Assembly: GCA_973895155.1 (NCBI GenBank)
Contig: OZ316898.1
Coordinates: 808,751 to 872,750, forward strand
Reading direction: 5' to 3'
DNA: 64,000 nt
Source: Marsupella aquatica
Taxonomy: Eukaryota > Plantae > Marchantiophyta
The translations under genes were made by a program, and so were the position numbers. Under the pieces are notes generated by a model. It saw only the letters and a list, made by a program, of their open reading frames with translations. It had not been told where the DNA came from and made no database searches. Shown here piece after piece: positions 24,601 through 61,300 of the stretch; within the stretch, counting starts at the first letter, position 1; every line of letters begins with the position of its first letter.

Positions 24601-27600
24601 GAAGTCTGTTGTAGCACTATTACGTACTGTGGCAATGTTCTTCGCTACGACCCGAAAATGATTGCTGGAAGAGTTCTAACCTAATATTTCAGTAGATTTC
24701 CAGCAATTCATTTTCGTACCATTTAGGAGTTGCAGTCATGTCGCAATTATTATACCCTGCAGCCAGCTAGAATTTTTAAGAATACTGATTAGAGCTGTAT
24801 CCGAGTGCAATAACTCTTGAAGTCAGTGACGAATTAAATTTGAGGCTCTTCGAAAACAGGAAGCTCGACATCAATCTTTACACGCAGTTCATTGTAGATC
24901 AAAATTTGGTGCAGTCGACGGAATTCTGTCCACAACATATTCTCTTCTCCCACATTTGTTTGCTTTTCATGCTGCAAGTTGATCAGAAATTCTATGTATT
25001 TTTTCAAAGGTAGACACTTAAGTAAGGAATAAGTACCATGTTCCTTAAGACTTCCACAGTGCTCTGTGAGAAGTTTGCTTTCCCCTTGTTTACTTTGTCA
25101 TGTACTGTCTATTATCATTGTTTCCCAGACCCTGTGGTATATGACGCATTTGCCCATTGGACTCCAGGGGCATATCGTTCTTGATTCTCGATCAGTCATT
25201 CAAGACCTATTTATCTGACTATATCATCCACAGAATCATCAAAGAAGCAAGTACTATATTATTTTGTGACTAGCAGAAATTATACTCACCTGATGCATGA
25301 AATTGGAAAGAATTGCAGTAGCAACACCAGCATAACTTGAAGGCTTTGGCTGGGCCTGCCCGAAAGCCAGTTGTTATATCTGACTGGCTGGAATGTTTTC
25401 CTCTTCAACACTCTCGATTCCCGTTCACAATCATGTTCTGAACTGAGAAGTGGAAGTCAACCCACCAAGCGACATTATTGTTAGACAACTCAGGAAAAAT
25501 CAGACCCGCACATCTGCGGTTGCATGTATTGGAGAAAGTTCGAGACTGATACAAACAGTAAAATAAAATCCAAGTTACTAATAGAAAACTGGAAAAAATG
25601 AAATGAAAAAACGGAATCCAGCTCTATTAATGATCGGGCATATCGATAAAAGGTAGCGCAGCTTTTCGAAGATCCTGGAAAAAAATGTGAAAAGTTACAG
25701 ACACATGGGTAGGGACGGTGGGGTGTGCTCGGGCCATGTGGGTTGCTGTCTAACGATTCGTCCAAGGAGCTTTATCTGAGACCAGAAACACTTTGCAAGA
25801 ATATTAAACCCCCAAAAAGCGCAGATGGCCCGAAGACTTTGGAAGCTTTTCTACGCCAGTCAGCGAAAGGTGAGGCTGGGTCCCAACATGAGAACTCACC
25901 TTGATGATTAGTTTGCATCAGTTTCCATCATTCCAGAGCTTAAAAAAATTGCTCGTCCGTCAAGGCGCACCCAATCAACCAACCGACATGCCAACAAACT
26001 GCCTGGTGCCTCAGTTTCCTTAGTTTGCGGAGGGACCAAATAATTAAAACCATATGTTTGTGGATTGTTGAGAACAGAGTGCCATTGGTCCGTGTTCGTG
26101 CCCTCGAGCGCCATGTGTGCTCTTCACCTTTTTTATTCCCGACACGGGATACCAAGAATTTTAATAAACGAGTTGTACTTCATCTTTTCGGTGTCTCGCA
26201 ATAACTTGACCGAGATTTCCGTTTCAAGGAAAAGAAAGGAAAGGAAAACCAAAAAAGCAAAACATGCAGTGTCCTACTTTTTTAATAAAGGGAGTCACCT
26301 TTTGAACAAGCCGCCCAAAACAATCCATTTCTTGAGCCTCCCGTTGCGAGTCCCCTGACGCATCCAGTATGTTCACTTTAGTTGTAGATATAGTATATAA
26401 AGAAACACGATCCAACATAACATGCATGAGGTTGGGACGATGGGGACAATTGTCTGAAGGTCATTTGTTTTCAACTGGCAACTTCTCATCATTCAGCTTC
26501 AAGGTTAGAATACAGTTTGGGATACAGACACCCCTTTGAGTTCCTGCTAGTCAAGACTGAAAATAGGGTCCTTGTGCCCACTGTAGCGTCCCTTCTTGTC
26601 TTTGTTTAGGGAACACGGTCCAAGAAGAACTGCTGTAGATTTGCTTATTAGAAATTGAGTGGTAGTCGCAGGTCATAGCAAGAAGTCCAGGTGGAAAAAC
26701 AATTCTTCCTTTGTTGTTAATTTTCCTCAGCAGTAACGCATGAATTAATTCAAAAGTGCATATCCCAGCTTATACGAAGCATATAATAAATTGGGATTAG
26801 ACTAGGTTTAGACTAGATTACTTATTACTGGGTTGTCAGGTCAAGGATGCCGATTTGGGAACCCACTAAACCTTGTATCTAATTTTTAAACCACTATGTA
26901 TTCCTGTATTGTGTCTAACAGTGAAAATGTGGGTCCCACTAGCTGGAACTGTTTCCATCCTGAAAACCTTCGTTAAGGTTCCGTGTTTCCTATGTCGGCG
27001 ATGCAAGCCTTCACTATTCTGGGAGGCAACCGTACGAAGTCTTAAGCAAAAACTTTTAGAAAAAGGACACAGAGCTAGTGCATTCTTCTTAGTGAAGCTT
27101 GTGTTTGCTGTAGTTCACTTCATGAGCCAAAAACTACTGAATTTTCAAAAAAGGGCCAGGGGACTCACCATGTCGATGTTTCAGCAGTTGAGTGTCTGTA
27201 CCGCCCACCAGCTGTTACATTCAATTGAAGAGCTTAGACAGGTTCTAAGGCCAATCCTAAACCGACTCAAACCTGCTGAATTACACTGGGTCAGTTCAGC
27301 CCGTGGAAAATCATATACGTCAGCTCACGATCAAGTGAAGCATGTCCACATTTCTTTCCAGATGATAACAAGCTCATAGTCAGGACCAAATCTTCTCAAC
27401 CCCAGGAGTTGAACCTGGCAAGACGTCCTCATACGTGGTTTGACACAACCAGCAACCAGCAAGCAAAGATGAAAGATCACGCAGCAAGCAAACCATGAAC
27501 GAATCACATCCCGATATTCAGTTACACACTCAAAACAAAGGACGAAGTAGGAAGACAGCGAGAATCAACCCATATCAGCTTCCCCAATCCATGACCTAAC

Positions 27601-30408
27601 CACTTGTAGCAGCAGCAAGCAAAGAAAGAACCGACATAACCTCTTGTGTAAATACTACATACAAACCAACAACCCACAAAACATCGGCTACTATATCTAG
27701 GTATAATATATTTGCGTAAAGGAGCCTTGAAAATAAAATAAAAACATCGGCCACAATTGGAAATCTATTGTAACTTGAACGAAGTAGTGGTTATACAGAT
27801 AAAAGTGCTGCCCAAAGCAACAACATAGAACTCTGAATGTAAAAACTTTATCGTGCTAAACACATCAAGCGCACCAGAATGAGACAAGGAAACAGATTCA
27901 AGGAAAATTCACAATCGTATCAAAATGGAAGGTTCAAGAACAAACATCCACATTCAAAAGAGGAATGAAACTTTGAAGAGAAGTTTAGCTAGTCTATAAG
28001 TGAACACAACATTCAGCATACCTTTATCGTGAGTTACTATTTAAACCAGGTTGATAGTTTGGCCTTCCTCTTAAGTCCATCTGCAAAATTCTGAAGAATG
28101 TTGTATAAGAGTTTTAGAACAAAGACCCTCTGTTCTATATCTTAACCTTGACTGAGGTAAAGGTGATCACCAAAACTAGACGGGGCACTCTAAAGGTCCG
28201 GCGAGTACTAAAGTAACATTTTCTAGCCGTTGGAATACCTCACTAATCCTACGAGCTACAAAGTATTGACGAAGAGGATCGATAGATTACCAGTATAGAA
28301 ATTCCTAATGTACACTAGGAAATTCCAGTGTACATTAGAAGTGTACAATTCGCAAATTCAAAACAAACCGCATGACAAGCAACGATGAACCACCATTATT
28401 ACAAGGAGTAGGACAAAACAGGATCCAATTCACCATCCTCAAACAATGACATTGCGTTCTCCTTTGCACAATGGGTCGTCTCTCCAATAACAGATGTGCT
28501 TCAGGAATGTGGTCCGTACCAAATAGCACCTTCCTACCAAAATGTCAAGTGCTGGAAAAGAGTCATTGGTGAATACATCGGCTGCTATACCGAAGGAAAT
28601 CACAGATCAGTTCTGCACAGGGACGCTTTGAGGGAATATTTCAGTTGATTTGAGTTGCGAGCTGTATTAATAGAATTCATGTTAATAAAGAGCTTATGAT
28701 ATCTCAATAACGAAGTATTATCACATCATAGTGGAAACGAACATGGAATTTCGACAATCAAGTGAAAGGCAAAGAACACTTCTTGAGATGCCAGGAGCTA
28801 TTGCTGCATTGCTTCCCTCGGAAGGACGGAAATCGAATCCTATGGGGGCGAGGCCTGTAACCATAAGATCACCAAAAAGCCTGCAACGTCACCAAAAAGC
28901 AGCACATGTCGACGACATACGCATCAAGCTATACAAAAAGCCACGAGACAAGGGACATGCACCGACCAAGAGTTGATTGTAGCCCACACCAGTAAACTTG
29001 AAAGGGATGGAAGATACTGGCAGGAAGGTAGAGGGACACGGGTGTCAACGTAAAGAGCCGATTCTTGATGTCATAATCTGTAAGAAAATCTGTACCAGCC
29101 ACAGACAAGTCGCACCATATCCACCACCATGCTTAAGAACTGTTCGTATTAGTACATCTGTATGGTAGAGACCTCATCTCAGGTGGTAGATCGAAAAGAA
29201 GAAATGTTAACCAGTAAGCCCTCAACAGTATAAACTAACAAACAAATGTATCGTAAAACAAACAAAACTGCCAGGTGCAAAAGCTTGAATTGCAGACAAG
29301 TAGAACAAATTGCAGAACTACGCCAAAGCAACAACGATAGTCGCAACTCGATCAGTTCTGGAAAAACATTGGCTACAAGAGTAGAAGAGCAACCACTTAA
29401 TGAGTGGATCGCATTCGTACAAAGCAAACACTACAAAAAGCTCAAAAATTGACCCAGACTTGAGAAAAAGGACCACAACCCTTAACTGTTCAAATTGAAC
29501 TTGAATTTTCATCGAGTTGTGCTCTGAGGAGACTGGTAGAACTACGTCTTCTTACTTCCGAAGTTTTCGTTATGACAAAACTAGACAATCCCACATCTAT
29601 GCAGAAATGTTCAACAGAAGATTAACAACAAGTTGCTCCTGTTCTTCTAGGTTTCGGAAATATTGCAAAATTGATTGACACATACATACTCCAGAATGCC
29701 GATTCGTGGGCTTTCACTTCCGCCTTAGGAGGCACACTCCAAGTAAGAGAACTTGATCACATTCGTTCGACTTCCATGTTACCGGTTGAAAACCATCAAA
29801 ATTAAACATGAGACCAAGATAAGAATATTTTAAAGAATTTGAAAAACGGAAAGTGCCAGACCTTTAATTTATAGTTTAATCAGGTCAATCAACCTTACAA
29901 CCAGCAAGAGTACCAATCAAGTCCAACGAACCTTTCTTGAAGGTACCTAAAACCTGTGTACGACAATAGCCACTGTACTCAAAACAGATATGCTGCAACC
30001 AATATACTCAACTGCATCTGTACCTTATGACTCCAAGTGGTGAAGAGACACAAGATCAATATCAGATCTAATTACATTTCAAACTGAAGTCCCATGCTAG
30101 AGAACTCAAATGAACTCGAACCAGAGTGCTAAAAAGTTGAACAGATTCGATCTTGGGAATATTCCTCCACATTCTCGGAACAGTCACGTAAGGCTCATGC
30201 TGTAGATGTTTGCTTTGTATCGCCTGCAGTTACCAGTCCGCGAGACAATACGTATCTGATCAAGGCGCAGTAGCATAACTAAATCACATCAGCAGGGAGA
30301 CGCTACGAATAGTTGAACGACCCCAACATTTCACAAGATACAAGATCCCAATGTCTGAAAATTATAGCAAATTTCTGAAACACATACCGTCTCGAATCCA
30401 GCTAGAAA

Positions 30409-30516
30409 GGGTACAGACAAACCGTTTCACTCATGTGGGGTGCACTAGCAATCCCCACCCATGGGTACAGACAAACCGTTTCACTCATATGGGGTGCACT
30501 AGCAATCCCCACCCAT
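30409..30516. repeat. Tandem duplication, 2 x 54 bp with one mismatch, each copy containing a small hairpin
   Basis: GGGTACAGACAAACCGTTTCACTCAT(G/A)TGGGGTGCACTAGCAATCCCCACCCAT occurs twice, with an internal TGGGG/CCCCA stem. Confidence 0.95.
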
Positions 30517-31189
30517 CCACGCGCACTGGCAACAATAATGTACAAACTATCATTAGACAGCAGACCACACCACTGCACAGGCAGATCATATGAATGAAAC
30601 CGTCAAATTAAATAGTAACCTACTTATCGTTCCCCACGAAATCAGAAATAAGTAAAGATAAATTGGTCGAAGGGTCAGAGGAGGAGAGGATGCTAGGAGC
30701 AACACGAGACTTCTACTCTTGACGTCCTCATAGTGCGTCCCTAAAGTCCCAGAAAGGCATTTAGATGACGTATTGAACTACGATCACAACTCAGGGAGAC
30801 GTGTGAAGTTCAAAAAAAATTCTTTAAAAAACCAGATTAGATGAGCAAGGGTCTAGGTAATCCCAAGATAATCCCAAGTTGTTATGCTGCTCCGTTTCGA
30901 AATAATTTCCAATTGCTTGTTCGATCGGGGTGAGGAGAATAGCATCGGGGACGAAGTGTCCACCTCCCCACACAACACCAACCCTGTGGCAACAGTCTAC
31001 GGAAGAGAAAACGAAGTGCACTCGGCTGGCTGTGTCAAGATATAAACTCCAACAAGAACATGGGTAAAGAAAGTAAATAGCTTTAGGGTCAAAAACAGGA
31101 TTATTAAAACACTAGATTGGGGATAAAAACCATTCCCCAAGAGTTGATCCTTATCTCCAAAGCGAGTTGTGGTGAGTTTCTTCCATAGT

Positions 31190-33550
31190 CTACAGCTGCA
31201 CAACAGTAGAGAAAGGCGGATAAAACTGTTCTTAGCTAGCTACTTAGAGGGCTCCATTCCCACGACAAACGAACCGACCGTGACAAGTTTACAACTCTGA
31301 ACAATGGAATACAATAAGGTACAAGTACCGAGGGTACTTAGGGGTTCGACGAGAGTAAGATGGCCGTCGTGTCCTGTAGTAAATCAGGTGTTTGAAGAGC
31401 AACACTCAATCTTGCCACCTGCAACGTAGAAAAGAGGAAGTACTGTTCTTAGCTCCAAAAGCTACTCGAAGGCTTCATGACCACGACGAACGAATGCAGC
31501 TTGTCAAGTAAACTCTAAATAACAGAAAGAAGCTAGTTCCAGTACGAGGGCACTTAGGGTTTGGCGAAACTAAGAAGGTCGTCGTTTCCTGTTGTGAATC
31601 AGGTGTCTGAAGAGCAAAACTCCAGCGTTCCACCTGTAACAACGTTGAGAAGAGGAACTATGCTCAGCTAGCTACTTGAAGGGTTTCATCGCCACGGCAC
31701 TTAGGGTGTGGCAGACTAAGAAGGCCGTCGTTTGCTGCTGTGGTTCAGGTGTTTGACGAGCAGAACTCCAGCTTTCCACCTGGAACAACGTGGAGAAGAT
31801 GACGAACTGTTCTTAGTTTGCTATTTGAAAGGCTTCACGACGAACCAATTCACTGTGTCATGTAAACATTCAACAACAGAATGCAATTAGATACAGTATA
31901 GAGGGCATTTGGGGTTTGGCGAAACTAAGAAGGTCGTCGTTTCCTGTTGTGGTTCAGGTGTTTGAAGAGCATGACTTCAACTCTCAACCTGCGACAACGA
32001 CGAGAAGCGGAAGAACTGTTCTTAGCGAGCTACTTGAAGGGCTTCGTGAACACGACGAACAACTCAGCCTGTCGAGTAACTTTGAACAATAAAGAGCAAG
32101 TAGTTATTGTATGAAGGGAACTCAGAGTTTTGACGAGACTGAGAAGATCGCCGTTTCCTACTGTGGTTCAGATATTCGAAGGGCCCAGCTGTGCACCTGC
32201 AACAACGTAGAGAAGAGCAAGAACTGTTTTTAGCTAGCTACTTATATGCTTCGTCACCACGACGAACCACCTCACCATGTAAGTCATCTTTTGAACCACA
32301 GAATGCAAATATATAGTGTCTAGGTATGAAGGCGCGCTTAGGGATGGACGAGACTGAAGATCGCCGGTTCAAATGTCCGCAAGGCGCACTCCAACTTTCC
32401 ACCTGCGCCGTGAGGACAAAAAACACTTACCTCAGCTGACTACGAAAGACCAAGTTCCTTGTCAAGAAGCTTCAAGAAGAAAGTAAACGATAAGAGAACC
32501 CAAAATGTGGACAAAATAAGTAGTGGAGGGTCCTCGTCAAAGTCGACAACACATGAAAGCTCTTGCGAATTACAATTCGAAGCCATGACAAGTTTCAAGA
32601 ACCACTTCAACTCTACACCTGCGCCAACATTCAGAGAGCAACATGACATTGTTCGCAACTGGCTTCAAATCTGAAATCGCGATAACCGGGAGAAATTTGA
32701 AAAATGGAAGAATGCGAGGTTCCCAAAGTGTAAATTCAACTCTATGAAGAGTCGAAAGCCTCCAGGGGCGTGGAGCACCAAATCGATTATCCTCCTGCGT
32801 CAACCGCAGATGGAAAGAAATCCCATGGTTCTTAGCTGGCTGCATAAGCAAACCTTCGTGCCAACAAGAAAAGAGGATTGCCCGTGCAAAGAACGTTCTT
32901 AACTAAGAACGAATTTTAGAACTAGTTGAAAATTCGTGACTAGTAGATTCATCAAGAGCAGAACGCCCCAGTGGTTACTTCACCACACTGACTTTCATGA
33001 GCTTCAAGCATGACTCCAATTTTCGACCTGCATCACCGTTAATGGAGGAAAATCACTTTGACCTTAAGCTCGCTGCAGAAGGAAACATTCGTGACTACGA
33101 AGAAAGAGGTTTGCCCACCTAACAAAAGACTTCAAATCAGGAGAAAAGCGAGATAACTACACGAGAAATGAGTTGAAATGAGTTTCGATATATAAAACAG
33201 TATAAAACTTATGATGAAACTTCCCAGTGCAGAAGGATCTTCCCAGAGCAGCCGCGAAATGGTTCTATAATCACACCAAGGTTTACACCTGCACCAACAT
33301 CGAGAGGGGAAGAAGACAACCCACTCTTAGCTGCCTGAACGGAGATTGTGCCCGGCACATGAACGTAACAAATGAGTAAGGCAGGGCTGAATGGACACTC
33401 GTCATTCGACGAAAAAAATTCTCACGGTTGCCATGTGCAAATTCGATCATCATAAAAGCATTCAGTCCTACCAATAAGAGTTCACCACCCAGACTACAGT
33501 TCTGCGTCTTAGTCGATGAAAGATAAAGAACCTTTCTCAGCTGACGGCCA
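31190..33550 (-). repeat. Diverged tandem array of ~12 units (146-261 bp, mostly ~210), each carrying a minus-strand branch point, pyrimidine tract and CAG 3' splice-site module
   Basis: The plus-strand anchor (C)CTGC-like motif occurs at 31196, 31419, 31634, 31780, 31989, 32197, 32403, 32619, 32795, 33028, 33289 and 33502. Each is followed by a purine-rich tract and TT/TC-AGC. The units at 31196-32400 align over their full length; the distal units retain mainly the splice module. Confidence 0.85.
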
Positions 33551-34772
33551 TGCTCATACCCATAAGCATGACGTAAAAATTCATACAAAAGCTAGTCTCG
33601 AAGTCACATGTACTGAGATGCACAATTTGGGCACTGGAGAATAAAAAAAGGAAGACAGACGGCTTGGATGCTGATCTTCGACAACAATACTCCTCAGGAT
33701 ATTATACCCTTGCAAATAAATTGAAAGAGGTAGAACCGGTGAGAGCAAGAACGTAAGATCACGTATTGTGGTGGACACTGACGACGCTCGCTGATGCCTA
33801 CGAATACAATGCCTGCTCAGCAGTTTGCTTCCCTCCATCACAAGTTTCAGCACCCAGATGCGAATTCGTCGCTGTCGTGATTAACCAACACCATGTCATT
33901 ACCAAATAAATCATCTTGGACCCACGAGAGTGAAATCACAATCATATCATGCAAAACAAGTCTCGATACGTCCTGACACCATTTAAATCAAACATCGAAC
34001 TACTCCTGGACGGTTGGAAAGAATAGACGAAAGATGAACGGGCTGTTAGGAGGGGTGTTGCCCTGATATGATAAGCGCTGAACGTTCTCGAGAAATATAG
34101 CAGAACACGGCCACGGACTCTGTGGTATGGCAAAAACGGGCAGAGGTAGTCTCAGAAAGAACAAACGACCTCCCAATCAATCGTTTGCGAGGAGAAAATT
34201 TGGAAGAATGACGAACATATGATGACAAATATCAAATTCAAATTTTCAACATTCGGCGGACAAGGAATCCCCCTGTACTTTTGGAGTCACGCATAAGTCA
34301 GCTGGCACTCCTGAACACCACGGCTGAAAATCTTGTCCACGTTGCACGAGAAATGACAAGTTCACGACAGGCGCAGTTGTGCGACATGGGGTAGGGTGTT
34401 TAACCAGCGTACTCTACAACCATGTTAGACACCGGAAAACGGCTCAGAAAGCCACAAAGATTGTGATCACTAAGTTGCATATCAAGTTGCAACAGAAGGA
34501 AAAGGCAAGCCTGCTACTCTAGTAAGAAAGGAAAAGCGAGCCCGCTATGTCATTGAAACATTTTTTCTGAAATCTCCGCCAGCCGACTTCAACTTAGATC
34601 ACTCCTGTACATGCAATTTGGCAGGCAGAAAATGTCAAGGAGCGAAACAAGCTTGGAGTGATGTGACGCTTTTCTTTCTTATAAAATCGGGGTTACTGGA
34701 ATTATACTAAGGGAGATCTATACCATATCACCACTTATAGCTATAATAGTACGCAAAGAATGAAGCTGAAGC

Positions 34773-35086
34773 TATCAGGCAACAACTAAGTGCTAGACCC
34801 ACAATACATCTGTAAATCCAGAAAATGTCGTGTCTTTAACTCCCTGATGAAGAAGTGTTCACTCAAAGACTCTTTGCATCAAGATGTATCCCACTTTGCT
34901 AGCGATCATCCTCCCCGTTTTACTCAGTATCAGGCAACAACTAAGTGCTAGACCCACTATACATCTGTAAATCCAGAAAATGTCGTGTCTTTAACTCCCT
35001 GATGAAGAAGTGTTCACTCAAAGACTCTTTGCATCAAGATGTATCCCACTTTGCTAGCGATCATCCTCCCCGTTTTACTCAGTATC
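34773..35086. repeat. Near-perfect tandem duplication, 2 x 155 bp
   Basis: TATCAGGCAACAACTAAGTGC...CCCCGTTTTACTCAG starts at 34773 and 34928, with one visible mismatch. Confidence 0.95.
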
Positions 35087-38000
35087 TACATAAGGAACAC
35101 GGTTTCAGCAGCTCGCAGGCAAAGACGCCTAAGCAAACGGCATAATAACATATTCAAAGCACACGCAAGAGTTATCCCGAGTAACAAGATGAAACAATGC
35201 TGAGATTAAATTAACAACAACATTTCACAACAGCGTCTCCCTCATATGTGCAGAGAACTCTCTGATGGGCCGACAAAGCCAGTCGCTCAGGTTCAACAGC
35301 TTCACAACTCCTCTATCATTTGATAACGTGTACAACAATTTGGTCTTTGGATCTCTCAAGCCGTTTCGTCTCCAAACGCTCTACATAAGGAACACAAACA
35401 TGGAAGGACCACAAATCTGAGAAGATGAGGCAAATGCCTGAACAGACGCCTAGATAGTTGCAACCGTCAAGAACGAAATGACCATTACATAAGGTCTCTC
35501 TAAGCGCTCATAAAGGCCAAGGCTCAAAAACATCAGCAATTTGATACTAAACCCGATCACCGTGCTAACTTCAATTCTGACGTTAAAAAAATGTACTCCT
35601 GGCGCGCGGTGCTTCTTAATCAGCTGACGTCTACACAGATCATCCCAACTGCACTCTCGTCGACACAAGGAGCACAGACTTTGAGCAGCTAGCAAGCTGA
35701 TATGAAGAGGTAGACGCTGGACACAAAGGAGACAGTAGGAAATATCTCAACGACTCTGCAAGCATAGTGCACGAAGGCTCCTCCTATTATTTAGAATAAA
35801 TCGGTTCCGGATGTAGAGAGTTGTGAATCTTCGCTCGAAAGCCAGTAGATGGTAGAATCAACTGCATATGACAAATTCGCGCCGCATATATTTCCGGCCT
35901 CCGAGATCTGTGCATGACCACAGTACTCAGCAGCACGAATTTAAACGTTCTTCCAAGCAGTGTCCAAATGGATCCTTTCAGAAACTTCTCTGTGAACTGA
36001 AGAAAAGTTGACTGATACTTATCCAACCTTAAGATTGAAAGGCTCCTCAACTTCCAAGTTGCAAAGGCGGCTATTGTACATGGATTCCCAAGCGACGCTA
36101 ATGATTCATCGTCCAATCCCGGCAACAGCCAAGGCACAAGAGCCCAGCCGCCCAGAAGAACGAAGAAAACAAATCCCCGTAAGAGCAGAAGAGATGGCAA
36201 TGTAAGCATCCTCAACAGAATTCTTTCAAACACTGAGCAGAAAAGTCCACATAGTTCTCGCAGGTTGCGAACCTCAAACGGAGCTACTGCCCACCTTCCA
36301 GTCCCACCGAAATCTACATGACGGCAAAGTAATTCAGCTGATAAGCGCCACAGCAGAGAGACAAACGCCAACAGGATGGAGAGATGACAGTTCAGCAGTT
36401 CAAGAAACATAGCGAAGAGCTCTTCTATTCCCGCATATGAGAACTCCCCAACGGAAGCAACAGATCAATCCGGGTTCGAAAAGAGTTCCTGCTGACGATG
36501 TTATAGTGCATCTGACAGCGCTGGTAACTTCAGAACAAATCCAAGCATTCAGCTATCTGCAAGCTGAGATAAAAAAACGGCTACGTCCAGATTCTCGCAG
36601 ATGCACTGCAGTGCCGCATGAACATTCAGTGGTATACGAAGGAATTCGCTGTCGGCTTCCATCCTGATGAGTACTCCTCGCGGATTAGTCAAGCAGCAGT
36701 GTCGTGCTTGCTCCGTGGCTCCCATCGTCATCATAGACCTAGGTAGCACCAAATTGAAGAGCCAGTAACCGGACGCTTCAAAATCAAACTTCGTGCCGAA
36801 AGGGTAAACATTATCAAGATAAAACCATCTGTACCCTGGAAGAGAACTGAAGTTCGGCCGCTTCTTGATGACATTAATGCTGGAAGAGTCGGGTACAATA
36901 CACGCAGCCTCACATCCTCGGCAACTCTCATCTCCTCAACAATTCAAATAGACAAGAACTTAGACAACCCCGAGCCGGCCCGACCGTCACAAGTAAACAT
37001 GACAGAAGTTTTGAAGCGGTATCACCAAGAAAACTAGTTTTCCATGAAAACACTAGCAGAACCAAACGATAGCAACCATGACCGGCTCGTTGAGCAGCTC
37101 CTTGACTCCGAGACGCATCTCCCGTACACCCACGAACCTCAAGTCGAAAACATTCGGCTTACCACTTTCCTGCTACTATCAACATCCCAGTCAACTCCTT
37201 CAGTAGCCCACAGTTTGGGCCAACTTTTCCGTCGCCCAAACGTCTCCCTCACATGCTAGCTCCCACCTTTGAATCTGATGACAAAAATTGCTGAAGGAAA
37301 ATTGCGTCCGACCCAAAATAGTGGACACCGACATTGGTTGAATATGAGCACAAAGAAAGGAATTTAACCCATCTCAACTATCTCGGTGAAGCGCGTGGTC
37401 AACAGGGAGAGTGGACTTCACGCTGTGAGTTTCAGCATTATCTTGCGCTTGAAGTAAAACGCTCGCCTCTGTTTCACCACCACTCACAACCTTTCATACT
37501 ACGCCAGCACAGTCCTGCATCGAGCCTGTTCACATGACAGGCGGGTCTAGCAGTTGAAAGTCCCCAGTGCTAAAAGAGTTTCAGCGAGATTATTCACCTC
37601 CTGCCAAGAACTGGATCTATGGCCTAAGTGAGGTACCGCTCTGACAGACTGGCTTCGACGGGCTCCCTGCACAACGACCCAGACATTCCAACTATCCAGA
37701 AAAAGTAGTCCTCGAGAAAAACTATTACAGGTTTTCCTCGAGTCTAGTGTGTTCCCATCCATTTCAACATCTGACGTCTAAAGTGGATCTAAGATTCATC
37801 ATCTTAACAGACACTGAAACTAGTGAAAAGTACATCACCACCGAATCAGTCGATCGTATCCCGCATTCTCTCAACGACGACAAGCTGCACCTACGCCGCT
37901 CCCATCAGAGAATTAAAGATTCCCTGCACATGGACCGACGCATTCCAAACAATCCCCGGAAACAATCCCTGTCCTCAACGAGTTCATCCATAACTGCTAC

Positions 38001-38665
38001 CAGCAAACTTCAATCCACAACTTGGCCAAAATCAACCGGAGCGCTTGGAGCTCAGGATGTACACTATCAGGCGCTCGTCAGGAGAAATCTCCAACTGTTC
38101 AAGGTCACCTGCATCCTCGAGGACATTCCGGAGTAGTCCTGCACAAATACCGACATCTGATACCAGTTTGGAAAGAAACTTCGCAGACATACTCGGAGAA
38201 CCAACTCGACGACCCAAGCTATAAAGCTTAATAACATGGCGAGTCGCAATGAACGAGACATAGCGAGAAAACTTCCCCGCCCAACAGAGATCTCATCCAC
38301 CGCCTCCCACATCGTCATTCCAACGCTTCCTCCTCAGGAAAAGCAGTCCCATCCACCAACCAACCCCGGAAGGCAGTGCATCTGACGGGGCAAAATCAAC
38401 ATGCCCAAATCCTTCTAACATTCCAGATTGAAAACCCAGACACCGCCGCTGCGCAACAGGAAAACCCATCGCATCAAACTGACCCGTGAAGGTCAAACAT
38501 CAATCTCAAAACAAAACAACCATCCTCCACTAGTCCGGGACTGCCTCGGCGCCTCGCAGACTGAGAACTCTACCGACGCCAGAAAAAAACCTCCCGCATC
38601 TTGGCACGCCAACATTCTCAACAAAGACAAACTACACAACACTTTTCCAGACCGTGGCGCTTCTC

Positions 38666-38673
38666 TTTATATA
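38666..38673 (-). promoter_or_regulatory. TATA box (TATATAAA) of the putative minus-strand transcript
   Basis: Consensus TATA motif lying between a GC-rich proximal-promoter-like segment (38900-39250) and a GU-rich leader. Confidence 0.5.
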
Positions 38674-39331
38674 TTGTCTTGAACCAGCCATCAAGAAGCC
38701 ATCTCTACCCGAGCTGGAAGCTTTGAGTACAAGCCAAGTAGCCAACAGAACCCACGCATCCCATCCGACCTTTGCTCCGTTGCTGCCGCAACCGCAGCAG
38801 CTCGAGAACGAGAACGAGAACGATGAACTGACAGCGCACCATTGGGACCATAATAACTACACGGTAGAGACTAGAGAGTTCGTCTAGTCCAGAAGAAGCT
38901 GCCCAAGCCACGCGACGGGGTGGGTCCCGTGGACGACACGTCTAGTGGGGGGGCGTCCCACTCCTCGAGGAGGGAGGAGGGAGGAGGGGGATAGGGCCCA
39001 CCGAGGAACGAACCGATCAACATCTCAACACGACAGTGCCGGGTGGCGACTCCGTCAACGAAACGTGTTTGGGCGGTGCCGACTCGCCCCACCCACCACA
39101 TCACCGATCGATCTGCGCCGTATATCGTGGGGGATCGATACGACACGTTACGAGGAAGTTATTTCGCTCTAACTGTATTTGGAGGGTCGATCGCGCAGTC
39201 GTTGCCATCGGTATCCACTGAAGCGCTTGTGAGGGCGTCGTTACAAAAAAAACTCCGTTTCAGGTTGCATTAGCCCTCAAAGCGGTTTCAGGTTGCACCA
39301 CTTACAAGTTCACTCAATCAATTGCATTACT

Positions 39332-43523: not shown

Positions 43524-43908
43524 AGTCCACGTCATTTCCAACTGACATAATTCTCGAGGTTTATGATTGGAATTCTAGCAGCAGATGAGGGTTTAACACT
43601 GCCAAGTCCACCTCAATTCCAATTGACATAATTCTCGAGGTTTATGAGAGGGAATTTGAGCGGCACGTCAGGGTTTAACACTGCCAAGTCCACCTCAATT
43701 CCAACTGACATAATTCTCGAGGTTTATGAGAGGGAATTCGAGCGGCAGATCAGGGTTTAACACTGCCAAGTCCACCTCAATTCCAATTGACATAATTCTC
43801 GAGGTTTATGAGAGGGAATGCGAGCGGCACATCAGGGTTTAACACTGCCAAGTCCACCTGACATAATTCTCGAGGGTTTATGAGAGGGAATTCGAGCGGC
43901 AGATCAGG
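43524..43908. repeat. ~82-bp minisatellite (~4.6 copies) immediately upstream of the PPR-DYW gene
   Basis: The unit is CCAA(C/T)TGACATAATTCTCGAGGTTTATGAGAGGGAATTCGAGCGGCA(G/C)ATCAGGGTTTAACACTGCCAAGTCCACCTCAATT. Confidence 0.95.
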
Positions 43909-44151
43909 ATTTTACAATGCCGCTTTCGCAAAGCTCCTCCTCCTCCTCCTCACCACCACAGTCACCGCAATCACTTTGGTGGACATTCACGCAGAGTAGG
44001 AGCAGTAGCGTAGCTGAAACGATGAGGACGAAGGGGAAGAGATTAAATATCATCGCAATGTCTGAGAGGAATACGCGGCTCAGTGTTTTGACGGTCTGAC
44101 TAACGAAGGAGAGCGGGTCCATTGAGAGCGGCGTGGAGGGAAGGGGTTGCT

Positions 44152-47100
44152 ATGACTGAAGTGATGAAAGGGAGCAGCCCAATCCTGCCGGGGTTCGGGC
44201 CGCCGCCACAGCACCAGGCCCGGCACCTCTCCTCTGCGTCCACCTCTGCCTCCAAAGTCCTCTCGTCCCACTTCCAGCCCTGTCGACGGGTTCGACAGCA
44301 TTCCTCGCACACCATCAGGTCCATCCCAAGGTTCTTTCCTACATTTCGTTTGGTCCGTAGTTGTTCAGTTTCTGCAATTCTTGACGTAACTACACATTAC
44401 TTCCTGCTTGTTGTGATCGTCATTTAGATTTCATGTCGCATTCTTCTGTTTTCCGCACATGTTGAACCCTGGAACCTATAAATGGGCCTCTGCATTAATC
44501 CCTCACTCATTGCTGTTGACTGGAAGGTACTCTAAATAGGTTCGACATAGGCATCAATCTATGAGGTTGGGTCCTGTGAATTCTAAGGAGGATTGCTTCC
44601 CTTCCCTTCCCTTCCCTTCCCTTCCCTTCCGAAAAAGTGTCTCCAATGCACACATTCCTTGGTCGCTTCTTTACAATGTAGAGCAATGTCCACCATTTTC
44701 CATTTTTCTAACTTGTAAACTGCGTTTTATTCACTTTCTTCAGGCATCAGCGACAGCAGGTGCTTCTCCTGGATAATGAATTGCAAAATGAAAGTTTTTG
44801 TGTGAAGCATCTCCCATCTTCTTTACGTGGAGATGCCAGAGCGCTGAACCACCAGAGGCCGTTCGACTCGTATCCCACCAGGGAACCGAAGAGAACTGTG
44901 GATGTGCAGGCTTTCAATAGAATGTTTGACGAATCTCATCGATCCTCAGGGAATTATCCCACCCAGCTCCCCACTGCACTGGAGCTTCAATTCCCTTCTG
45001 CTAGCGTAGATAAGAGCAAGAGCCGGGACTTGAATGCTCCTGGGACTTTGGACCAAAATACTTTATCGTCAACGCTCGTAGCTGTCCAGCCCGGTTCGAA
45101 AGCAAGCCACAAGTCAGTACGCACAGTCAACGCTATCTCAGAGCATAGAAGGTCACGCCGAGAGGAAAAGATTACATCTGATCAGCGAGCCCCAAGTCCA
45201 AATAATGGGCGACCTGGTCCAAGGTCCGAATCGACCTACGTGCCCCATAAACAACCTCTCCCAAGAAGCTCATACAGAATTGCTTCTAGGTATTCAAATC
45301 CGAATTGGTCTCGAGACACTGCACAAGGGTATAACAGAATGCACATGCATAGCGCTGGTAGCACGAGTGAAGCAATTGCTATTTTGAAGAATCGCCTACA
45401 ACGAGGTATTACTGTCGACTCGTACATGTATGTTGATGTCCTGAGAAGGTGTTCGAAGCAGAAAGACATTTTAATGGCCAAGCAGGTTCATGACTGCATC
45501 ATTCAGAGTGGAATGGATAAAAATCCATATGTGGCGAGCTCCCTCGTGAATGTGTACATCGAATGCGGGGAATTGTTGAATGCACGCAGAGTTTTTGATG
45601 AACATGAGAATAAGACTGTTGTTACATGGACCAGGATGATTGCAGGATATGCAAAGTATGATCATGCTGAATCTGCATATGAAATTTTCAATCAAATGCG
45701 CCAAGAAGGTTGGCGGCCCGATGAGATCACATATTTGAGCATCCTGAAGGCATGTGCCAGCCCATTAGCTCTCAGATGGGGAAAAGAAGTTCATGTGTGT
45801 ATTCGACATGCCGGTTTTGAATCGGATGTTCGTATAGGGACTGCCCTTCTTAAGATGTATGTAAATTGTGGGTGCATAACGGAGGCAAGACGAGTTTTTG
45901 ATAATTTGACAAATCGAGATGTCATCACATGGACTGTAATGATCGGTGGACTCGCACAACATGGATATGGACATGAAGCATATCGACTGTTTCTCCAAAT
46001 GCGACGGGAAGGCTTCGAACCAAATGCTATCACCTATATGAGCATCCTGAATGCATCTGCAAGTGCGGGGGCTTTGGAGTGGGTGAAGAAGGTTGATGGC
46101 CATGCTAGCAAAGCGGGAATGGAGTCAGATTTGCGTGTGGCCAATGCACTGGTTCACATGTATGCAGAGAGTGGCAGTATAGATGATGCGCGACGAGTGT
46201 TTGACAGAATGGAGAAACGCGATGTAGTCTCATGGAATGTAATGATCGGTGGACTTGCACAACATGGATGTGGCCATGAAGCATATCAATTATTTCTCCA
46301 AATGCGACGGGGAGGGTTTGAACCAGATGCATTCACTTTTGCAAGTATTCTCAATGCATCTGCAAGTGTGGAGGCTTTGGAGTGGGTGAAGGAGGTTCAT
46401 GGCCATGCTAGCAAAGCAGGGCTGGAGTCAGATTTGCGTGTGGTCAATGCACTAGTTCACATGTATGCAGAGAGTGGCAGTATAGATGATGCGCGACGAG
46501 TGTTTGACAGAATGGAGAAACGCGATGTAGTCACATGGAATGTAATGATTGGGGGACTTGCAAAACATGGATGTGGGCATGAAGCATATCGACTGTTTCT
46601 CCAAATGCGACGGGAAAACTTGGAACCAGATGCATTCACTTTTGCGAGTATTCTCAATGCATCTGCAAGTACGGAGACTTTGGAGTGGGTGAAGGAGGTT
46701 CATGGCCATGCTAGTAAAGCAGGACTGGAGTCGGATTTGCATGTGGGCACTGCACTGGTTCACATCTATGCAGAGAGTGGCAGTATAGATGATGCCCGAG
46801 TAGTTTTTGACAGAATGGAGAAACGTAATGTAGTCACATGGACTACTATGATCTTTGGACTTGCACACCATGGATGCGCGCATGAGGCCCTAGCTCTCTT
46901 CAGGGAAATGACTGCGGACCTTGTGAAACCCAACGGGACTACATTTGTAGCAGTGTTGTCTGCTTGTTGTCATGGAGGCCTTGTTGATGACGGCCGTAGA
47001 CTCTTTTCAGCTATGACGCAAGCTTATGGCATCGAGCGTACTGTTGTGCATTATAACTGCATGGTGGATCTTCTTGGGCGCGCTGGACACTTGGAGGAAG

Positions 47101-47753
47101 CAAAGCTCTTCATTGGTGACATGCCAACTGAACCAAATGGGGTAACTTGGAGAGCCTTGCTTGGGGCTTGTAGAACTTACGGTAATGTGGAGTTGGGCGA
47201 ACTTGCTGCTAAAGAGCTTTTCAAGTTGGAACCGAATAAGGACTCTACATATGTGCTTCTTTCCAACATCTATGCTGCAGCTGGCAAGTGGGAAAACGTG
47301 TCTTTGGTGCGCACTATGATGCAAACGAGAGGTGTTCGGAAGGAGCCAGGGCGTAGCTGGATTGAAGTTGATTCGAAGATCCATGAATTTGTCGTAGGGG
47401 ATACATCCCACCCAGAAGCAAAGGCTATATATACCGAGCTCAATAAGTTGAATGAAAAACTGAAGGCTGAAGGGTATATTCCGGATACCCGGCTTGTGTT
47501 GCATGATATCAACGAGGAAGATAAAGAACTAGCTCTTTGCTCTCATAGTGAGAAGTTGGCTATTGCTTACGGACTAATTCACATACCTCAGGAACAGCCA
47601 ATTCGTGTATATAAAAACCTTCGGGTGTGTGCAGATTGCCACACAGCAACCAAGTTTATCTCTAAGGTGACTGGACGCGAGATTATAGCGAGGGATTCAA
47701 ATCGCTTTCACCATTTTAAAGATGGCGTGTGTTCTTGTGGTGATTACTGGTGA
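44152..47753 (+). CDS. PLS-class pentatricopeptide repeat protein with E1/E2/DYW cytidine-deaminase domain (organellar C-to-U RNA editing factor). Proposed exons are 44152-44318 and 44744-47753.
   Basis: The 997-aa ORF has 17 L/S/P motifs, a PG box (PGRSWIEV), HSEKLA, CADCH and a terminal DYW. The ORF-track start (GTG 44760) is preceded by a pyrimidine tract and CAG| acceptor at 44743. Joining CAG|GT at 44318/44319 to 44744 (phase 2) puts ATG 44152 (or 44164) in frame. This adds a Ser/Arg/Pro-rich transit-peptide-like N-terminus (MTEVMKGSSPILPGFGPPPQHQARHLSSASTSASK...). Confidence 0.95.
44319..44743 (+). other. Predicted GT-AG intron of the PPR-DYW gene, containing a (CCCTT)n microsatellite at ~44596-44629
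   Basis: CAG|GTCCAT donor, T-rich body and TTCACTTTCTTCAG|G acceptor. Splicing preserves the reading frame. Confidence 0.7.
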
Positions 47754-54809: not shown

Positions 54810-55285
54810 GTATGTGTTTCGTCAATTCGTTGGCAACAATACTAGCTCGAAAGCATTTTGGAAAAGCTCCGCGCAGCAATCTTCTTAGCTCATTTGATCG
54901 ACTCTCTGTTCGTTCTTTCGAGTCGTTCGTAACTAGGTCTAAAGCATTTTCTGTGTAGCTCCCGCAATGGAATCGTAGCTGCACTCGCACTCTGACCCGT
55001 TTTCGTTCCCTACTACGATACAACGTTTTCGTTTGAGCGGTTCGTCAACGCGGAGCAGAGAATCTGCGCTTTATAGACCCTCTCTGGGCACGCGATTTTC
55101 GAGCATTCAGTGATCTTGAATTTGACGTACTGAAATTTCTGTGATATGGCCCCGCAGTTCACTGGAACGTCTCTGCGGCAATTGGGACTGCCGATTACCA
55201 TTGTTCAACACGCACCTGAAAACAATTAGGGTTTATTTCCTTGCCCTAAACCCTAAACCCTGTCCCGTGCCATTTTTCCCTGCAG
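54810..55285 (+). other. Predicted 5'-UTR intron of PES
   Basis: CAGC|GTATGT donor at 54810 and ATTTTTCCCTGCAG|A acceptor at 55285, 87 nt before the ATG. Confidence 0.55.
55227..55261. promoter_or_regulatory. Telo-box cluster (TAGGGTTT and CCCTAAACCCTAAACCCT) upstream of the PES CDS
   Basis: Exact AAACCCTA motifs occur in both orientations. Telo-boxes are an established feature of plant ribosome-biogenesis and translation gene 5' regions. Confidence 0.7.
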
Positions 55286-55372: not shown

Positions 55373-56974
55373 ATGGTGAAGCCGAACAGGGGTGGGAAAT
55401 CGGTGGGGAAGTCCAAAAAGGGTGGGAAATCCAAAGGGAAGAATGGCGTCAGGAAGGAAGGAAATGCATCGAGGTACATGACTCGAAGCGAAGTGCTGAC
55501 TCATCTGCAGCTGAAACTGCCAGAATTCAGGCGTTTGTGCATATTGAAGGGAATTCATCCAAGGGAGCCGAAGAAGAAGTTCGCAGGACACAACAAGACC
55601 TACTACCATGTGAAGGATGTGAAGTTTTTAGCCCATGAGCCGCTTTTGGAGAAGAGCAGGGAAATCAAAGCCTTCGAGAAGAAGATTAAGAAAGCCAGAG
55701 CCAAGAAGAATGAGGATGGCGCGCAAAGACTCGATAAGCTGAGACCTGTTTACCGACTGGATCACCTTCTCAAGGAGCGGTACCCGTCCTTCGTGGATGC
55801 TCTTCGTGACATGGATGATGCACTCACCATGATGCATTTGTTTTCAACCCTACCAGCAGATAGCACCCTCAAGATACCGGCTGAACGTGTTCACTCAGCC
55901 CGAAGGTTGATTTTGGAGTGGCAGGCTTATATCACCCAAACACATGCCTTGCGAAAGGTCTTCGTTTCCGTCAAGGGCATCTACTACCAGGCAACCGTGT
56001 CTGGCCAGGAAATCACTTGGCTCTGTCCCCATGTTGTAAGTCAAATTTTGCCAAACGACGTCGACTACCGTGTGATGCTAACCTTCGTGGAGTTTTATGA
56101 AACTCTTGTGGGTTTTGTTAACTTCAAACTCTATCACTCTCTTGGCCTTGCATATCCTCCGATCGTAAGTCAGAGTTCTGAACAGGCTACAGGATCCTTA
56201 GGAGAACTTATTGAGGTTGTTTTGACGGCGGGGAATGATGTAGGACAAGAAGATGCAGAGACTCTCCAGTGTAGAGATCTGTTCAAAGGCTTGACGTTTT
56301 TCTTAGCTCGGGAGGTACCGCTTGAGTCTTTGCTCTTTGTCGTCCGTTGTTTTGGAGGGACCGTGTCTTGGGATGGAGAAGGGTCACCACTTGAGGAGAC
56401 TGACGAAAGCATCACCCATCAGATTGTGGACAGACCAAACATTGGCCACGAGAGTTTGACTAGGGAGTACGTGCAACCCCAGTGGGTGTACGATTCTTTG
56501 AATGCTCGAGTTTTACTTCCCGTGGGTGCATACTTGTATGGAAAGATTCCACCCCCTCACTTGTCACCCTTCGTAGACAACGAGGCAGAGGGTTATATTC
56601 CTGATCAGGCTCTGCCTGTGGCCGGTAAGAAATCGGCAAATTTGTGGGAGACTGAGAACCGGACCAATCTTGCCGTCAAGGATGTGGATGTGCAACAGGA
56701 ACCCGTAGAGCTGGTTTATGCAGAACAGTTGCATAAGGAAATTGAAGGTGTTTCTTATTCTTCTTCGCTTCATAAGAAAGATCAAAAGCAAAGTTTACAG
56801 TCCGAACAATCTAAAGTAGTCGACGATGATCATACTGGACTTGAAATGATGATGCCCCGTAAGCAAAGAAAGTTGTATGAGGCTATACAAATGGGAAAGT
56901 CAAAAAAGAAAGCGAGTGTGGAGCTTCTGCAGAAAAGGAAAAAGAGGATTGAAGAGGCCAAACGTCTCAAGTAG
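55373..56974 (+). CDS. PES: Pescadillo/NOP7 homolog (PeBoW complex, 60S ribosome biogenesis), 533 aa, with BRCT domain
   Basis: The N-terminal Pescadillo domain has YMTRSEVL..LQLKLPEFRRLCILKGIHPREPKK, TYYHVKD, ERYPSFVDALRDMDDAL and VFVSVKGIYYQA. The BRCT region has FLAREVP..ITHQIVDRP..YVQPQWVYDSLN and PPPHLSPFVD, followed by a basic C-terminal tail. Confidence 0.97.
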   Translation: MVKPNRGGKSVGKSKKGGKSKGKNGVRKEGNASRYMTRSEVLTHLQLKLPEFRRLCILKGIHPREPKKKFAGHNKTYYHVKDVKFLAHEPLLEKSREIKAFEKKIKKARAKKNEDGAQRLDKLRPVYRLDHLLKERYPSFVDALRDMDDALTMMHLFSTLPADSTLKIPAERVHSARRLILEWQAYITQTHALRKVFVSVKGIYYQATVSGQEITWLCPHVVSQILPNDVDYRVMLTFVEFYETLVGFVNFKLYHSLGLAYPPIVSQSSEQATGSLGELIEVVLTAGNDVGQEDAETLQCRDLFKGLTFFLAREVPLESLLFVVRCFGGTVSWDGEGSPLEETDESITHQIVDRPNIGHESLTREYVQPQWVYDSLNARVLLPVGAYLYGKIPPPHLSPFVDNEAEGYIPDQALPVAGKKSANLWETENRTNLAVKDVDVQQEPVELVYAEQLHKEIEGVSYSSSLHKKDQKQSLQSEQSKVVDDDHTGLEMMMPRKQRKLYEAIQMGKSKKKASVELLQKRKKRIEEAKRLK

Positions 56975-58367: not shown

Positions 58368-61300
58368 TTATTGTTCCATCGCCCCCTCTTCCTCTTCATC
58401 ATCAACTGCCTCCTTCACATCAATTGTGAACTCATACTCCTGGTCACAACCCAAATATGCGTCACACATGAAAAACAGGGTGTACGTCTTCTTTCCTACT
58501 TCTGCCGGAGCTGTAAAGTCTAGTTTCACCTTGGCCCTTCGTTGTAAAGAAACTCGTTTTATTGCGAGGAGCTGATTACTGCTAGGTTCCCCTACGACAA
58601 GCCACCAACCTTCCTCCTTGGATTTTGGAAAGCGTGGTGCATCCACTGGCCCTAGCTCCTGTCTGCCATCCAACTCTCTTTCAAGTGTCACTTGTAGTGT
58701 TACCGTGTCCCCAGCAGAAATGTCGTCTTCATCAATGACTTCTTTGCCCAAGTCAATATTAGGAAACCGATTGCAGACTCTAGCAATGTCAAGGAGCTGT
58801 TCATTCGCCATCTGCAACAAATCCCGTCTCTCCCCATCCTCCATCTCTACGAGATCAAACACAGTCTCAATAGGCTTCCCTGGGTTCTCCTGACACCTCT
58901 TTGCCAACTCCTTCGTAAAATGAGGTAGTTGCAAGAGCACCGAATCTCGCTCCCAAAGCCCTTGAGTCACCATCTGGCTTAGCTCCATAGCTGCCAGAGC
59001 AGGATTCAACCATCCACTACTGGAAATCACATCCACCATTGCCTGCAGCAAACGGCTGGCATCAATCAACACCTCACGTTGGTCTGAGGCCAAATTGCCG
59101 TACACTTCATGTCGAGCAAAATGAGCTTGCAGAAGGGAGTTGGCCTTCACATGAGGATCAGTAGTCTTAGGCTTATCTACTGAGAACCTTTGGTGGTTGA
59201 TTAGTTTTCGGATCAACTCTTCTTCACCTGGTCTCATAGGTAATCTTGAGTACTCTGATGCTGACGCAAGAATTTCCAGTAACCCTTTCAGCTTGGTCTT
59301 GGCAGTCAAAGATGAGCTGAACAACTCTATTGTCGTGTAATTGATGTAGTAGTATGCCGCAATCATGCCCAGGTTCAATGGGGACAGATCCATATCATCT
59401 TCAATTGTAACACACTTGCTGGCTTCTAGCTCACTTAATGTCACCTCAACAAGTTCCGAGAGGTGATCTGAAAGATGGCGGTGACTAACTCCTTGCAGAT
59501 TGTAGTAGTTGGGATTTTGAGTCAATCTCCGGTACATAAATGTCCAAGTCAGATAGTCCACTGCATCCTGCTTGTTCTCAATTGTGCGAACCACAACTTC
59601 CGCATTCAAATGATCATGCAAGAAATGATCCAAATGGCTTTCAACCGGAAATGGTTCATACAAAAACTTCTTGTAGTATTCCTTTCTGGGTGCATGACAA
59701 AGAATGACACATTTGCCCGATGAATCAATTTGTGGCCGGCTTGCACGACCCATCATCTGCAGGAGATCTGTGATTGGGTAGTCAGTATGCGCATTTTCTC
59801 GACCATCATAGTATTGAGTTCCCATCACCACAACCAAGTGACCTGTCAGAGTCATGCCCCAACACATGCTGCTGCTGGCCACACAAACGTGAATTGCCCC
59901 GACATTAAACAGTTCAGCTGTTACCTCCTGCTCAAGAGGACTCAAACCCTCGTGCAAATAGCCCACCCCATGACTCAATGCATGAATCAAAGTGGGATCC
60001 TTGATTTTAGCCAAAAACGGGACCAAATCATTTTTGGTGCACTGTAGAAACTGAGACCTCTCTCCACCATCTGCCATTGAGTATGTAACTAAGTCCACGG
60101 CTGTGAGACGAGCATGCTTCCTCGTAGGGACAAAAACTAAAGCTGGTTTCCCAACTTTGGCGTGCTGAACAATTGCCGTGTAAGTAGGCTTAGTCATAGC
60201 CTGCATCCGAGCTTCAAAATTCGCAATGTCTACACCCTGTATGTGGATTTCAAGAGGCACAGGCCGAACTCCCGGAGGAAAGTTAAAGAGTCCATGAGAG
60301 CTTGCTCCAATCCACTCTCCAAGGTCCTTGGCATTTGCAAGAGATGTTGAAAGAGCCACAATCCGAATCTTGGATTCGGGCTGGCTACTAATATACCGCA
60401 TCCTCGACACAATCACCTCGAGAACAGGACCTCCTTCACCTCCAATCAAATGTAGCTCATCCACGAGGAAGAGACTGACTTGCTGCACATGCTTGCGTTG
60501 TTTCCAGCGTCGAGACAATACGTCCCACCTTTCAGGTGTGCTGATGATAATCTGGCCTCTCTCAAGAAGTTTCATATCTGTGGCAGTCTCACCCGTGAGC
60601 TCCACAACAGAGACCCCCAAGCCTTTACCGAATTTGTTCTCCCAATCTCGATAACGCTCCTTCGCCAGTGCCTCCACTGGAGCAATGTAAACACAACGCA
60701 TAGCACTATCAGAGTTCTGACTCTTGTGCAGCATACGTAACACTGCAAACTCTGCACAGATTGTCTTTCCACTTCCGGTTGGAGCTGCCACGAGAACATT
60801 GTCATCTGTGTTGTATAGAACAGTGAACACCTGTGTTTGAACAGGGTTGAAATGCCTGAACTGGTGGTAAAGTGCCTCGTACTCGGGTTTTCGTAATGCA
60901 GAGACTGGAAGCGGCTGCAGATCAAGGAGTTCAGTTGGAGGCGGATACTTCTCGGGTAGAATCAAATGACGGAATGACACAGGCAAAACAGTTTCAGCAC
61001 CAAGCCATTTATCTGACACTACCCTGATGAAATATTGAGGAGGCAACGGCTCGTGAATTGGAACTGAAAAGTTGAGCTTATGATCCTCCTCCACGTACTG
61101 CATCTTCAGCACGAAGTACTCATGATGAAGGATATTTTCTCCGTCATTGTCCTCAACAATTACCCAGAAAGGCTCAACATAACCGTGAATCTTCTCATCC
61201 CACTTGAAATCAGGAGTGATTGTCAGATCCACCTTCAATATAGATCTGGTGATAGGTTGGACGTGGGCAACTAACTCTAGTTTTGGAAACCGATGTATGA

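Follow-up and report, generated by a model that had tools for sequence, protein, structure and literature searches.

Why a sequence resembling a plant 3' splice site recurs roughly every 210 bp along one strand of non-coding DNA in the liverwort Marsupella aquatica, and whether the copies are kept as splice signals or were simply inherited, is the question raised by the locus described here. The window analysed is a stretch of 64,000 nucleotides of contig OZ316898.1 (assembly GCA_973895155.1, positions 808,751 to 872,750 of the forward strand). The element in question is a tandem array of head-to-tail units of about 210 bp (146-261 bp), all in a single orientation on the minus strand of window positions 31168-33400; 11 units are statistically supported. 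A first-pass annotation had read the array as 12 selectively conserved 3' splice-site modules in a non-coding minus-strand transcript, an interpretation that is partly supported overall. The explanation favoured here, with a probability of about 0.4, is that the array arose long ago by tandem duplication of a unit that by chance looked like a plant 3' splice site, and that it has been decaying since. Nothing shows that the units are used as splice sites or selected as such, and the array itself has no demonstrated function.

All 12 annotated sites were located on the minus strand, at 31195, 31418, 31633, 31779, 31988, 32196, 32402, 32618, 32794, 33027, 33288 and 33501, where each coordinate is the first base after the AG. 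Successive sites are 223, 215, 146, 209, 208, 206, 216, 176, 233, 261 and 213 bp apart, and the spacing and motif counts given in the annotation are correct. CAG is present at 12/12 sites and CAG/GT (the slash marks the junction) at 9/12, the exceptions being 31195 (CAG/CT), 32794 (CAG/GA) and 33501 (CAG/AA). CTAA or CTGA lies 33-42 nt upstream of the junction in 10/12 and is absent from that interval in 32618 and 33027. The order of sequence within a unit is (C)AGCT(A or G)AG, a short pyrimidine run, and then ACGTTG-NY-GCAG/GTG-GAAAG-NTGGAGT.

Support for the array comes from profile searches, alignments and the direct-repeat families D1-D9. A profile built from four proximal units recovers 10 units, with expectation (E) values from 6e-63 to 8e-3, and unit 32794 is tied to the array through unit 33027, with 69 % identity over -89 to +31. 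The twelfth unit, 33501 (33486-33542), is doubtful, since it is not significant with either the four-unit profile (E = 2.1) or a core profile (E = 0.13) and its identity to the consensus falls below the null; of the proposed 12-unit array, 11 units therefore stand. The cores of the proximal-type units lie at 31168-31256 (unit 31195, the last unit; core model E = 9.5e-13, and positions 18-111 of the full-unit model, E = 1.2e-12), 31390-31476 (31418), 31606-31688 (31633), 31751-31838 (31779, a short unit of 146 bp, placed by alignment and profile searches), 31960-32044 (31988) and 32181-32252 (32196). The core of the transitional unit 32402 is at 32376-32445. Distal-type cores are found at 32592-32674 (32618, which lacks CTRA at -30 to -40), 32767-32852 (32794, recognized by its similarity to unit 33027 and by the core model), 32999-33085 (33027) and 33271-33343 (33288). 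Except where stated, cores were placed by profile searches, and all are on the minus strand.

Because all copies descend from one founder, the 12 sites are not 12 independent occurrences of the module. Tandem Repeats Finder did not report the array, as the copies are too diverged. A check for a dispersed transposable element or satellite revealed no further copy in the 64-kb window or in two loci of the leafy liverwort Calypogeia fissa, the sequences to which the check applies, and scanning metagenomes for a degenerate pattern of the core gave only isolated chance matches among the matches listed.

A plant 3' splice site of the U2 type has the consensus UGYAG/GU, preceded by a U-rich tract and a CURAY branch site. 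The units resemble such a site in their YGCAG/GT core, their pyrimidine run and their CTRA box, which stand in the right order and on one strand. Among the 11 supported units, 10 have a pyrimidine at -5, nine have G at -4, every one has CAG, 10 have G at +1 and 10 have T at +2, which bears out the claim that the module fits the plant acceptor consensus. The proposed 30-nt pyrimidine-rich tract is less well defined. A pyrimidine run of 7-15 nt is present at about -27 to -13, and within it the seven columns from -20 to -14 are each pyrimidine in at least 10/11 units, with C and T interchanging; over -35 to -5, however, pyrimidines make up only 55-71 %, compared with 54 % for the whole of the 11.8-kb strand-asymmetric, non-coding domain in which the array lies (27250-39000). 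When sites are counted by an acceptor-like rule (YAG/G, at least 10 pyrimidines in the 12 positions upstream, and CTRA), the minus strand has 25 in 64 kb, including 10 in the 2.4-kb array and two in the remaining 9.2 kb of the T-rich domain. Such sites are thus about 20 times denser in the array than in the rest of the domain.

These likenesses are what an explanation at the RNA level has in its favour. The sites could be genuine 3' splice-site modules on a non-coding transcript of the minus strand. They might then offer alternative acceptors, provide a platform that loads or decoys U2AF, SF1 or SR-type factors, or form dual AG/GT sites through which repeats are spliced out in register; the downstream purine-rich stretch (GGAAAG-CT-GGAG) would then serve as an enhancer. 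This is possible, if doubtful. The acceptor consensus at -5 to +2, the pyrimidine columns that persist despite C/T interchange, the position of CTRA, the local density of acceptor-like sites and the persistence of the junction block in the distal units (described below) are all consistent with it. In addition, the module faces the T- and G-rich strand of a domain that starts near a TATA-like box. However, C/T interchange in the run is equally expected from transition-biased neutral change, and the pyrimidine content of the longer tract is close to that of the background.

The array has a two-part structure. Alignment still spans the entire unit in the six to seven proximal copies, and the four to five distal copies have in common only some 75 nt at the junction. 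The proximal units (31195 to 32196, and in part 32402) are 67-81 % identical in pairwise comparisons over about 200 nt, and the array is therefore old and is not being homogenized. Among these units, mean pairwise identity is 0.71-0.78 at -71 to -42, 0.72-0.76 at -31 to -2, 0.62-0.68 at -1 to +28 and 0.74-0.83 at +29 to +73. The module itself thus scores 0.62-0.76, compared with 0.71-0.83 at +29 to +87, which would be exon, and the frequency of the commonest base is 0.81 in -12 to +12 compared with 0.87 in -50 to -13. Only an AT-rich linker of about 50 nt is hypervariable. Within the proximal units the module has not changed more slowly than its surroundings: conservation is even between -71 and +87, with its maximum in the would-be exon. 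Of about 80 core columns, three do not vary, all of them within the CAG used as the anchor, and by our own estimate about three would be expected at roughly 20-30 % change per copy. Uniform conservation along the unit is the result that the first-pass annotation had itself named as telling against its proposal, and the per-column comparison is thus negative in the proximal units, where it can be made cleanly; selection on the splice signals is not established.

The distal units (32402 or 32618 to 33288) differ, and it is here that the evidence runs counter to simple inheritance from a splice-site-like founder. Only about -50 to +24 exceeds a null drawn from unrelated stretches of the same domain, and the linkers, which carry micro-duplications (for example at 33165-33184), vary in length by as much as 85 nt. 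Within what remains, a 24-nt block from -12 to +12, with the pattern GTTG-NY-GCAG/GTG-GANAG-NTGG, has a commonest-base frequency of 0.78 in five distal units, compared with 0.58-0.62 in its flanks. Across the 11 supported units, columns conserved in at least 9/11 number 13/24 in the block and 10/56 elsewhere. A permutation test with the CAG anchor fixed gave P = 0.011 (block) and P = 0.014 (the seven-column run GCAGGTG), although these tests are post hoc and the units were selected for containing the motif. Distal cores are also mutually similar (z = 2.5-10), whereas most distal linkers are not, with z between -1.2 and 2.5 apart from a single value of 5.5. A second CAG, at about -28, is eroded in the distal units, whereas the CAG at the junction is kept. 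This modest evidence indicates that a short, sequence-specific element around the junction has probably been retained in the distal units. Such retention suggests constraint on the element, which pure neutrality does not explain, and the block is the one observation that duplication of a chance acceptor-like founder leaves unaccounted for.

The composition of the block, however, only partly matches that of a splice site. Of the 11 supported units, the upstream half has G at -10 in nine, T at -9 in eight, T at -8 in 10, G at -7 in nine, any base at -6, a pyrimidine at -5 in 10, G at -4 in nine, and C, A and G at -3, -2 and -1 in all 11; the downstream half has G at +1 in 10, T at +2 in 10, G at +3 in nine, A at +5 in 10, A at +7 in 10, T at +10 in nine, G at +11 in eight and G at +12 in eight. 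Further conserved positions are +15, +18 and +20 to +21, together with an AGCT box at -43 to -40. The block reaches equally into the would-be exon and intron, and G is kept at -10 and -7 within what would be the pyrimidine tract. The plant acceptor consensus covers -5 to +2 only; the conserved GTTG at -10 to -7, with its two Gs, and the conservation at +3, +5, +7, +10 to +12, +15, +18 and +20 to +21, which extends 12-21 nt into the would-be exon, are not splice signals. The statement that the module persists in the distal units is thus accurate in that the junction region outlasts the rest of the unit, but what persists is symmetric about the junction and sequence-specific, unlike degenerate splice signals.

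The same positions can be read on the opposite strand. There, the block would present CACCTG-C-NN-CAAC about every 210 bp, and the array could be a homotypic cluster of DNA-binding sites with a cis-regulatory or chromatin role. The transcription factor RAV1 recognizes CACCTG through its B3 domain and CAACA through its AP2 domain (PMC6315318), and class I RAV genes, which combine AP2 and B3, are present in bryophytes, with one in Marchantia (PMC12526721). The array resembles the RAV1-type bipartite site in that CACCTG and CAAC lie 3 nt apart, on one strand, at its best-conserved positions: the sub-blocks GCAGGTG at -4 to +3 and GTTG at -10 to -7 are exactly the two half-sites, and conservation within the block is lowest at the two positions that separate them. 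In addition, CACCTG-N3-CAAC occurs exactly five times in the 64-kb window, always in the array, which also contains two of the three matches with one mismatch. A DNA-level explanation would account for the conserved Gs, which splicing cannot. On the other hand, the canonical CAACA is found in only three units, and most units read CAACG; the conserved block is longer than the bipartite site, and conservation from +5 to +21 is left unexplained; the nearest recognizable gene is 11 kb away; and the logic of reading a motif from the sequence alone carries the same post hoc risk as the splice-site proposal. A binding-site cluster of this type is considered unlikely and is put forward as a competing explanation, not as a result. 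The CACCTG hexamer is also an E-box. In four proximal units (31385-31960, plus strand), CAGGTG is found 31 nt upstream of CACCTG, so that the hexamer is present in both orientations; the second copy is lost distally.

If the 24-nt block is functional, the locus would represent a rare bryophyte case of an old non-coding repeat array preserved for a single short recognition element, and would provide a test of whether that element is read on RNA by splicing factors or on DNA by a RAV- or E-box-type factor.

Donor sites were scored with a rough matrix, and the scores are approximate. No more than two donor-like sites score 5 bits or higher on the minus strand of 26.5-39 kb, the alignment contains no conserved donor within the units, and the array lacks a partner donor. 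The donor-like strings named in the first-pass annotation are present. One of the two strong sites, GAG/GTAAGT at 32430 on the minus strand, lies 28 nt upstream of the CAG/GT of unit 32402, where the AGCTGAG box runs into GTAAGT and so gives a consensus donor. Another good donor-like site, ATG/GTGAGT, is found at 27163-27171 (minus strand), at the downstream edge of the asymmetric domain. As donors, the AG/GT junctions themselves score from -2.5 to +1.0 bits and have A or C, never G, at +5, which gives them little competence as 5' splice sites. The units cannot therefore be cassette exons and are poor recursive or dual-specific sites, and the suggestion that they serve as recursive AG/GT ratchet points in a long intron is not favoured. 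Eleven redundant acceptors without donors would also be hard for selection to keep.

A tandem array of dual-specific AG/GT sites is nevertheless documented. In human UBC, such sites fall at the repeat boundaries, and introns of this kind are enriched in tandem-repeat genes (PMC10809524). The present array is similar in having AG/GT at a fixed position of the unit, in 9/11 supported units and about every 210 nt, compared with every 228 nt in UBC, and removal of units in register is in principle possible. It differs in that UBC units are coding ubiquitin monomers and their site use was shown by reverse transcription PCR (PMC10809524), whereas the units here are non-coding, score weakly as donors and are known only as DNA sequence. 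A stronger form of the RNA-level explanation would hold that the 11 modules are working pseudo-3' sites or dual AG/GT sites on a minus-strand non-coding RNA of about 11 kb, acting as a factor-loading platform or allowing removal of units in register, with the 24-nt block at mutation-selection balance. We regard this as improbable. Were it true, the array would be the equivalent in plants of repeat-built regulatory RNAs, and would match the UBC splice-site array in a non-coding setting. NORAD, an animal non-coding RNA, is built of about 12 degenerate units, each keeping short protein-binding motifs. The likeness to it lies in the dozen or so degenerate units and in a short motif that outlasts the rest; the precedent is an animal one, and the present array is known from DNA alone.

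That the array is non-coding, as first proposed, was confirmed by several approaches. No open frame is common to all units. Pfam gave no match for 10 open reading frames (ORFs) of the array, none in 136 stop-free segments of at least 45 amino acids on both strands of 27.0-39.1 kb, and nothing beyond chance in the flanking ORFs or in other long ORFs of the window apart from the genes named below. An array ORF of 93 amino acids has no homologue that could be found. Substitutions between units lack 3-base periodicity (P = 0.55-0.75), and a scan of codon usage picked out nothing exon-like across the domain and 1-27 kb. At the RNA level, Rfam gave no match at gathering thresholds or at E up to 10, single units fold no better than shuffled sequences on either strand (z = -0.2 to +1.7), the consensus fold of 10 cores has 0 pairs, and a search for transfer RNAs found none.

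These results make it very improbable that the units derive from repeat-protein exons that have decayed, or that they form a polycistronic cluster of small RNAs (C/D small nucleolar RNAs, microRNAs or products derived from transfer RNA). Some frames are open for 50-100 codons, and the proximal units contain strings resembling a C box (GTGACGA, GCGATGA) and a D box (CTGA) about 100 nt apart with short complementary flanks. However, an array of repeat-protein exons, live or decayed, is rejected for want of a shared frame, a domain match or homologue, or a codon-position bias. A C/D small nucleolar RNA or microRNA cluster is likewise rejected, as there is no Rfam match or stable hairpin and the distal units have lost the box-like strings but kept the middle, whereas the reverse would be expected of small nucleolar RNAs. 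A telobox interpretation was also set aside, with only one exact AACCCTAA in the array, and target sites of miR156/529, miR166, miR319 and miR1030 matched poorly and were dropped.

Duplication from a founder that resembled an acceptor by chance is preferred, then, because the 11 significant units all lie on one strand, the module in the proximal units is no better conserved than the rest, the number of invariant columns agrees with our expectation, the distal linkers vary in length and carry micro-duplications, strong donors are nearly absent and the AG/GT sites are poor ones, and there is no coding signal, known RNA family or consensus fold. Four other local tandem duplications in the window (54 bp x2, 155 bp x2, 47 bp x2 and 82 bp x5), one of which is single-copy in C. 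fissa, provide a further reason. According to this model, a non-coding unit of about 210 bp would have been duplicated in tandem to 11 copies, probably by unequal crossing-over or replication slippage, in a region prone to such duplications. The founder would by chance have carried a pyrimidine run followed by GTTG-YGCAG/GTG, which fits the plant 3' splice-site consensus; every copy would have inherited this appearance, which would not be maintained as splice signals, and insertions and deletions would have reshaped the distal linkers. If this neutral account holds, the locus calls for caution, as a single acceptor-like founder copied in tandem mimics a selected bank of acceptors.

The array otherwise has much in common with degenerate, minisatellite-like non-coding tandem repeats of plant intergenic or intronic DNA, namely head-to-tail copies of about 200 bp in one orientation, hierarchical divergence, linkers of variable length, absence of coding potential and other duplications nearby. 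It differs from them in its age (67-81 % identity or lower), which places it beyond the reach of Tandem Repeats Finder, and in the 24-nt block that outlasts its flanks in the oldest units. The 82-bp unit, present five times at 43524-43921 just upstream of a PPR-DYW gene, occurs as a single copy at the orthologous site of C. fissa (L001:9473-9551). It is thus a lineage-specific tandem expansion, and local duplication is an active neutral process in this region. Inside the asymmetric domain, the 155-bp (34773-35086, 99 % identity) and 54-bp (30409-30516, 98 %) duplications are much younger than the 210-bp array.

The domain that holds the array has sharp edges. Its minus strand contains 3986 T and 2688 A (T/A = 1.48), and 2926 G and 2500 C (G/C = 1.17), whereas the non-genic DNA around 27.25-39.0 kb is strand-symmetric. 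A T- and G-rich sense strand is typical of long non-coding transcribed sequence. At the upstream end of the domain on the minus strand, a TATA-like TATATAAAG can be read directly at 38665-38673 and may act as a promoter, and a CT-rich patch is present at 38967-38990. The T- and G-rich composition together with the TATA-like box makes minus-strand transcription plausible, and the domain may therefore be a long non-coding transcription unit. The array probably lies within such a unit, and, in agreement with the annotation, the module stands on the strand that composition suggests is transcribed.

Three genes were recognized in the window by Pfam matches: a PPR-DYW gene at 44760-47753 on the plus strand, a Pescadillo gene at 55373-56974 on the plus strand and a BRR2 gene at 58368-63998 on the minus strand. 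Each appears in the window as one long ORF without introns. The presence of a DYW-type PPR gene is in keeping with a non-marchantiid liverwort in which organelle RNA is edited. The closest relatives of the PPR gene are in C. fissa, where the orthologous locus is 85 % identical in the coding sequence and 69-79 % in the alignable flanks; homology stops about 1.3 kb upstream of the PPR ORF (window position 43452), short of the array. A second C. fissa PPR gene lies on the same contig, CBCUJL010000044.1, at a distance of 3.5 Mb. Upstream of Pescadillo, telomere-repeat-like boxes (AACCCTAA), one on each strand, are found at 55226-55256, about 120-150 bp before the start codon; such boxes are usual in the promoters of plant ribosome-biogenesis genes.

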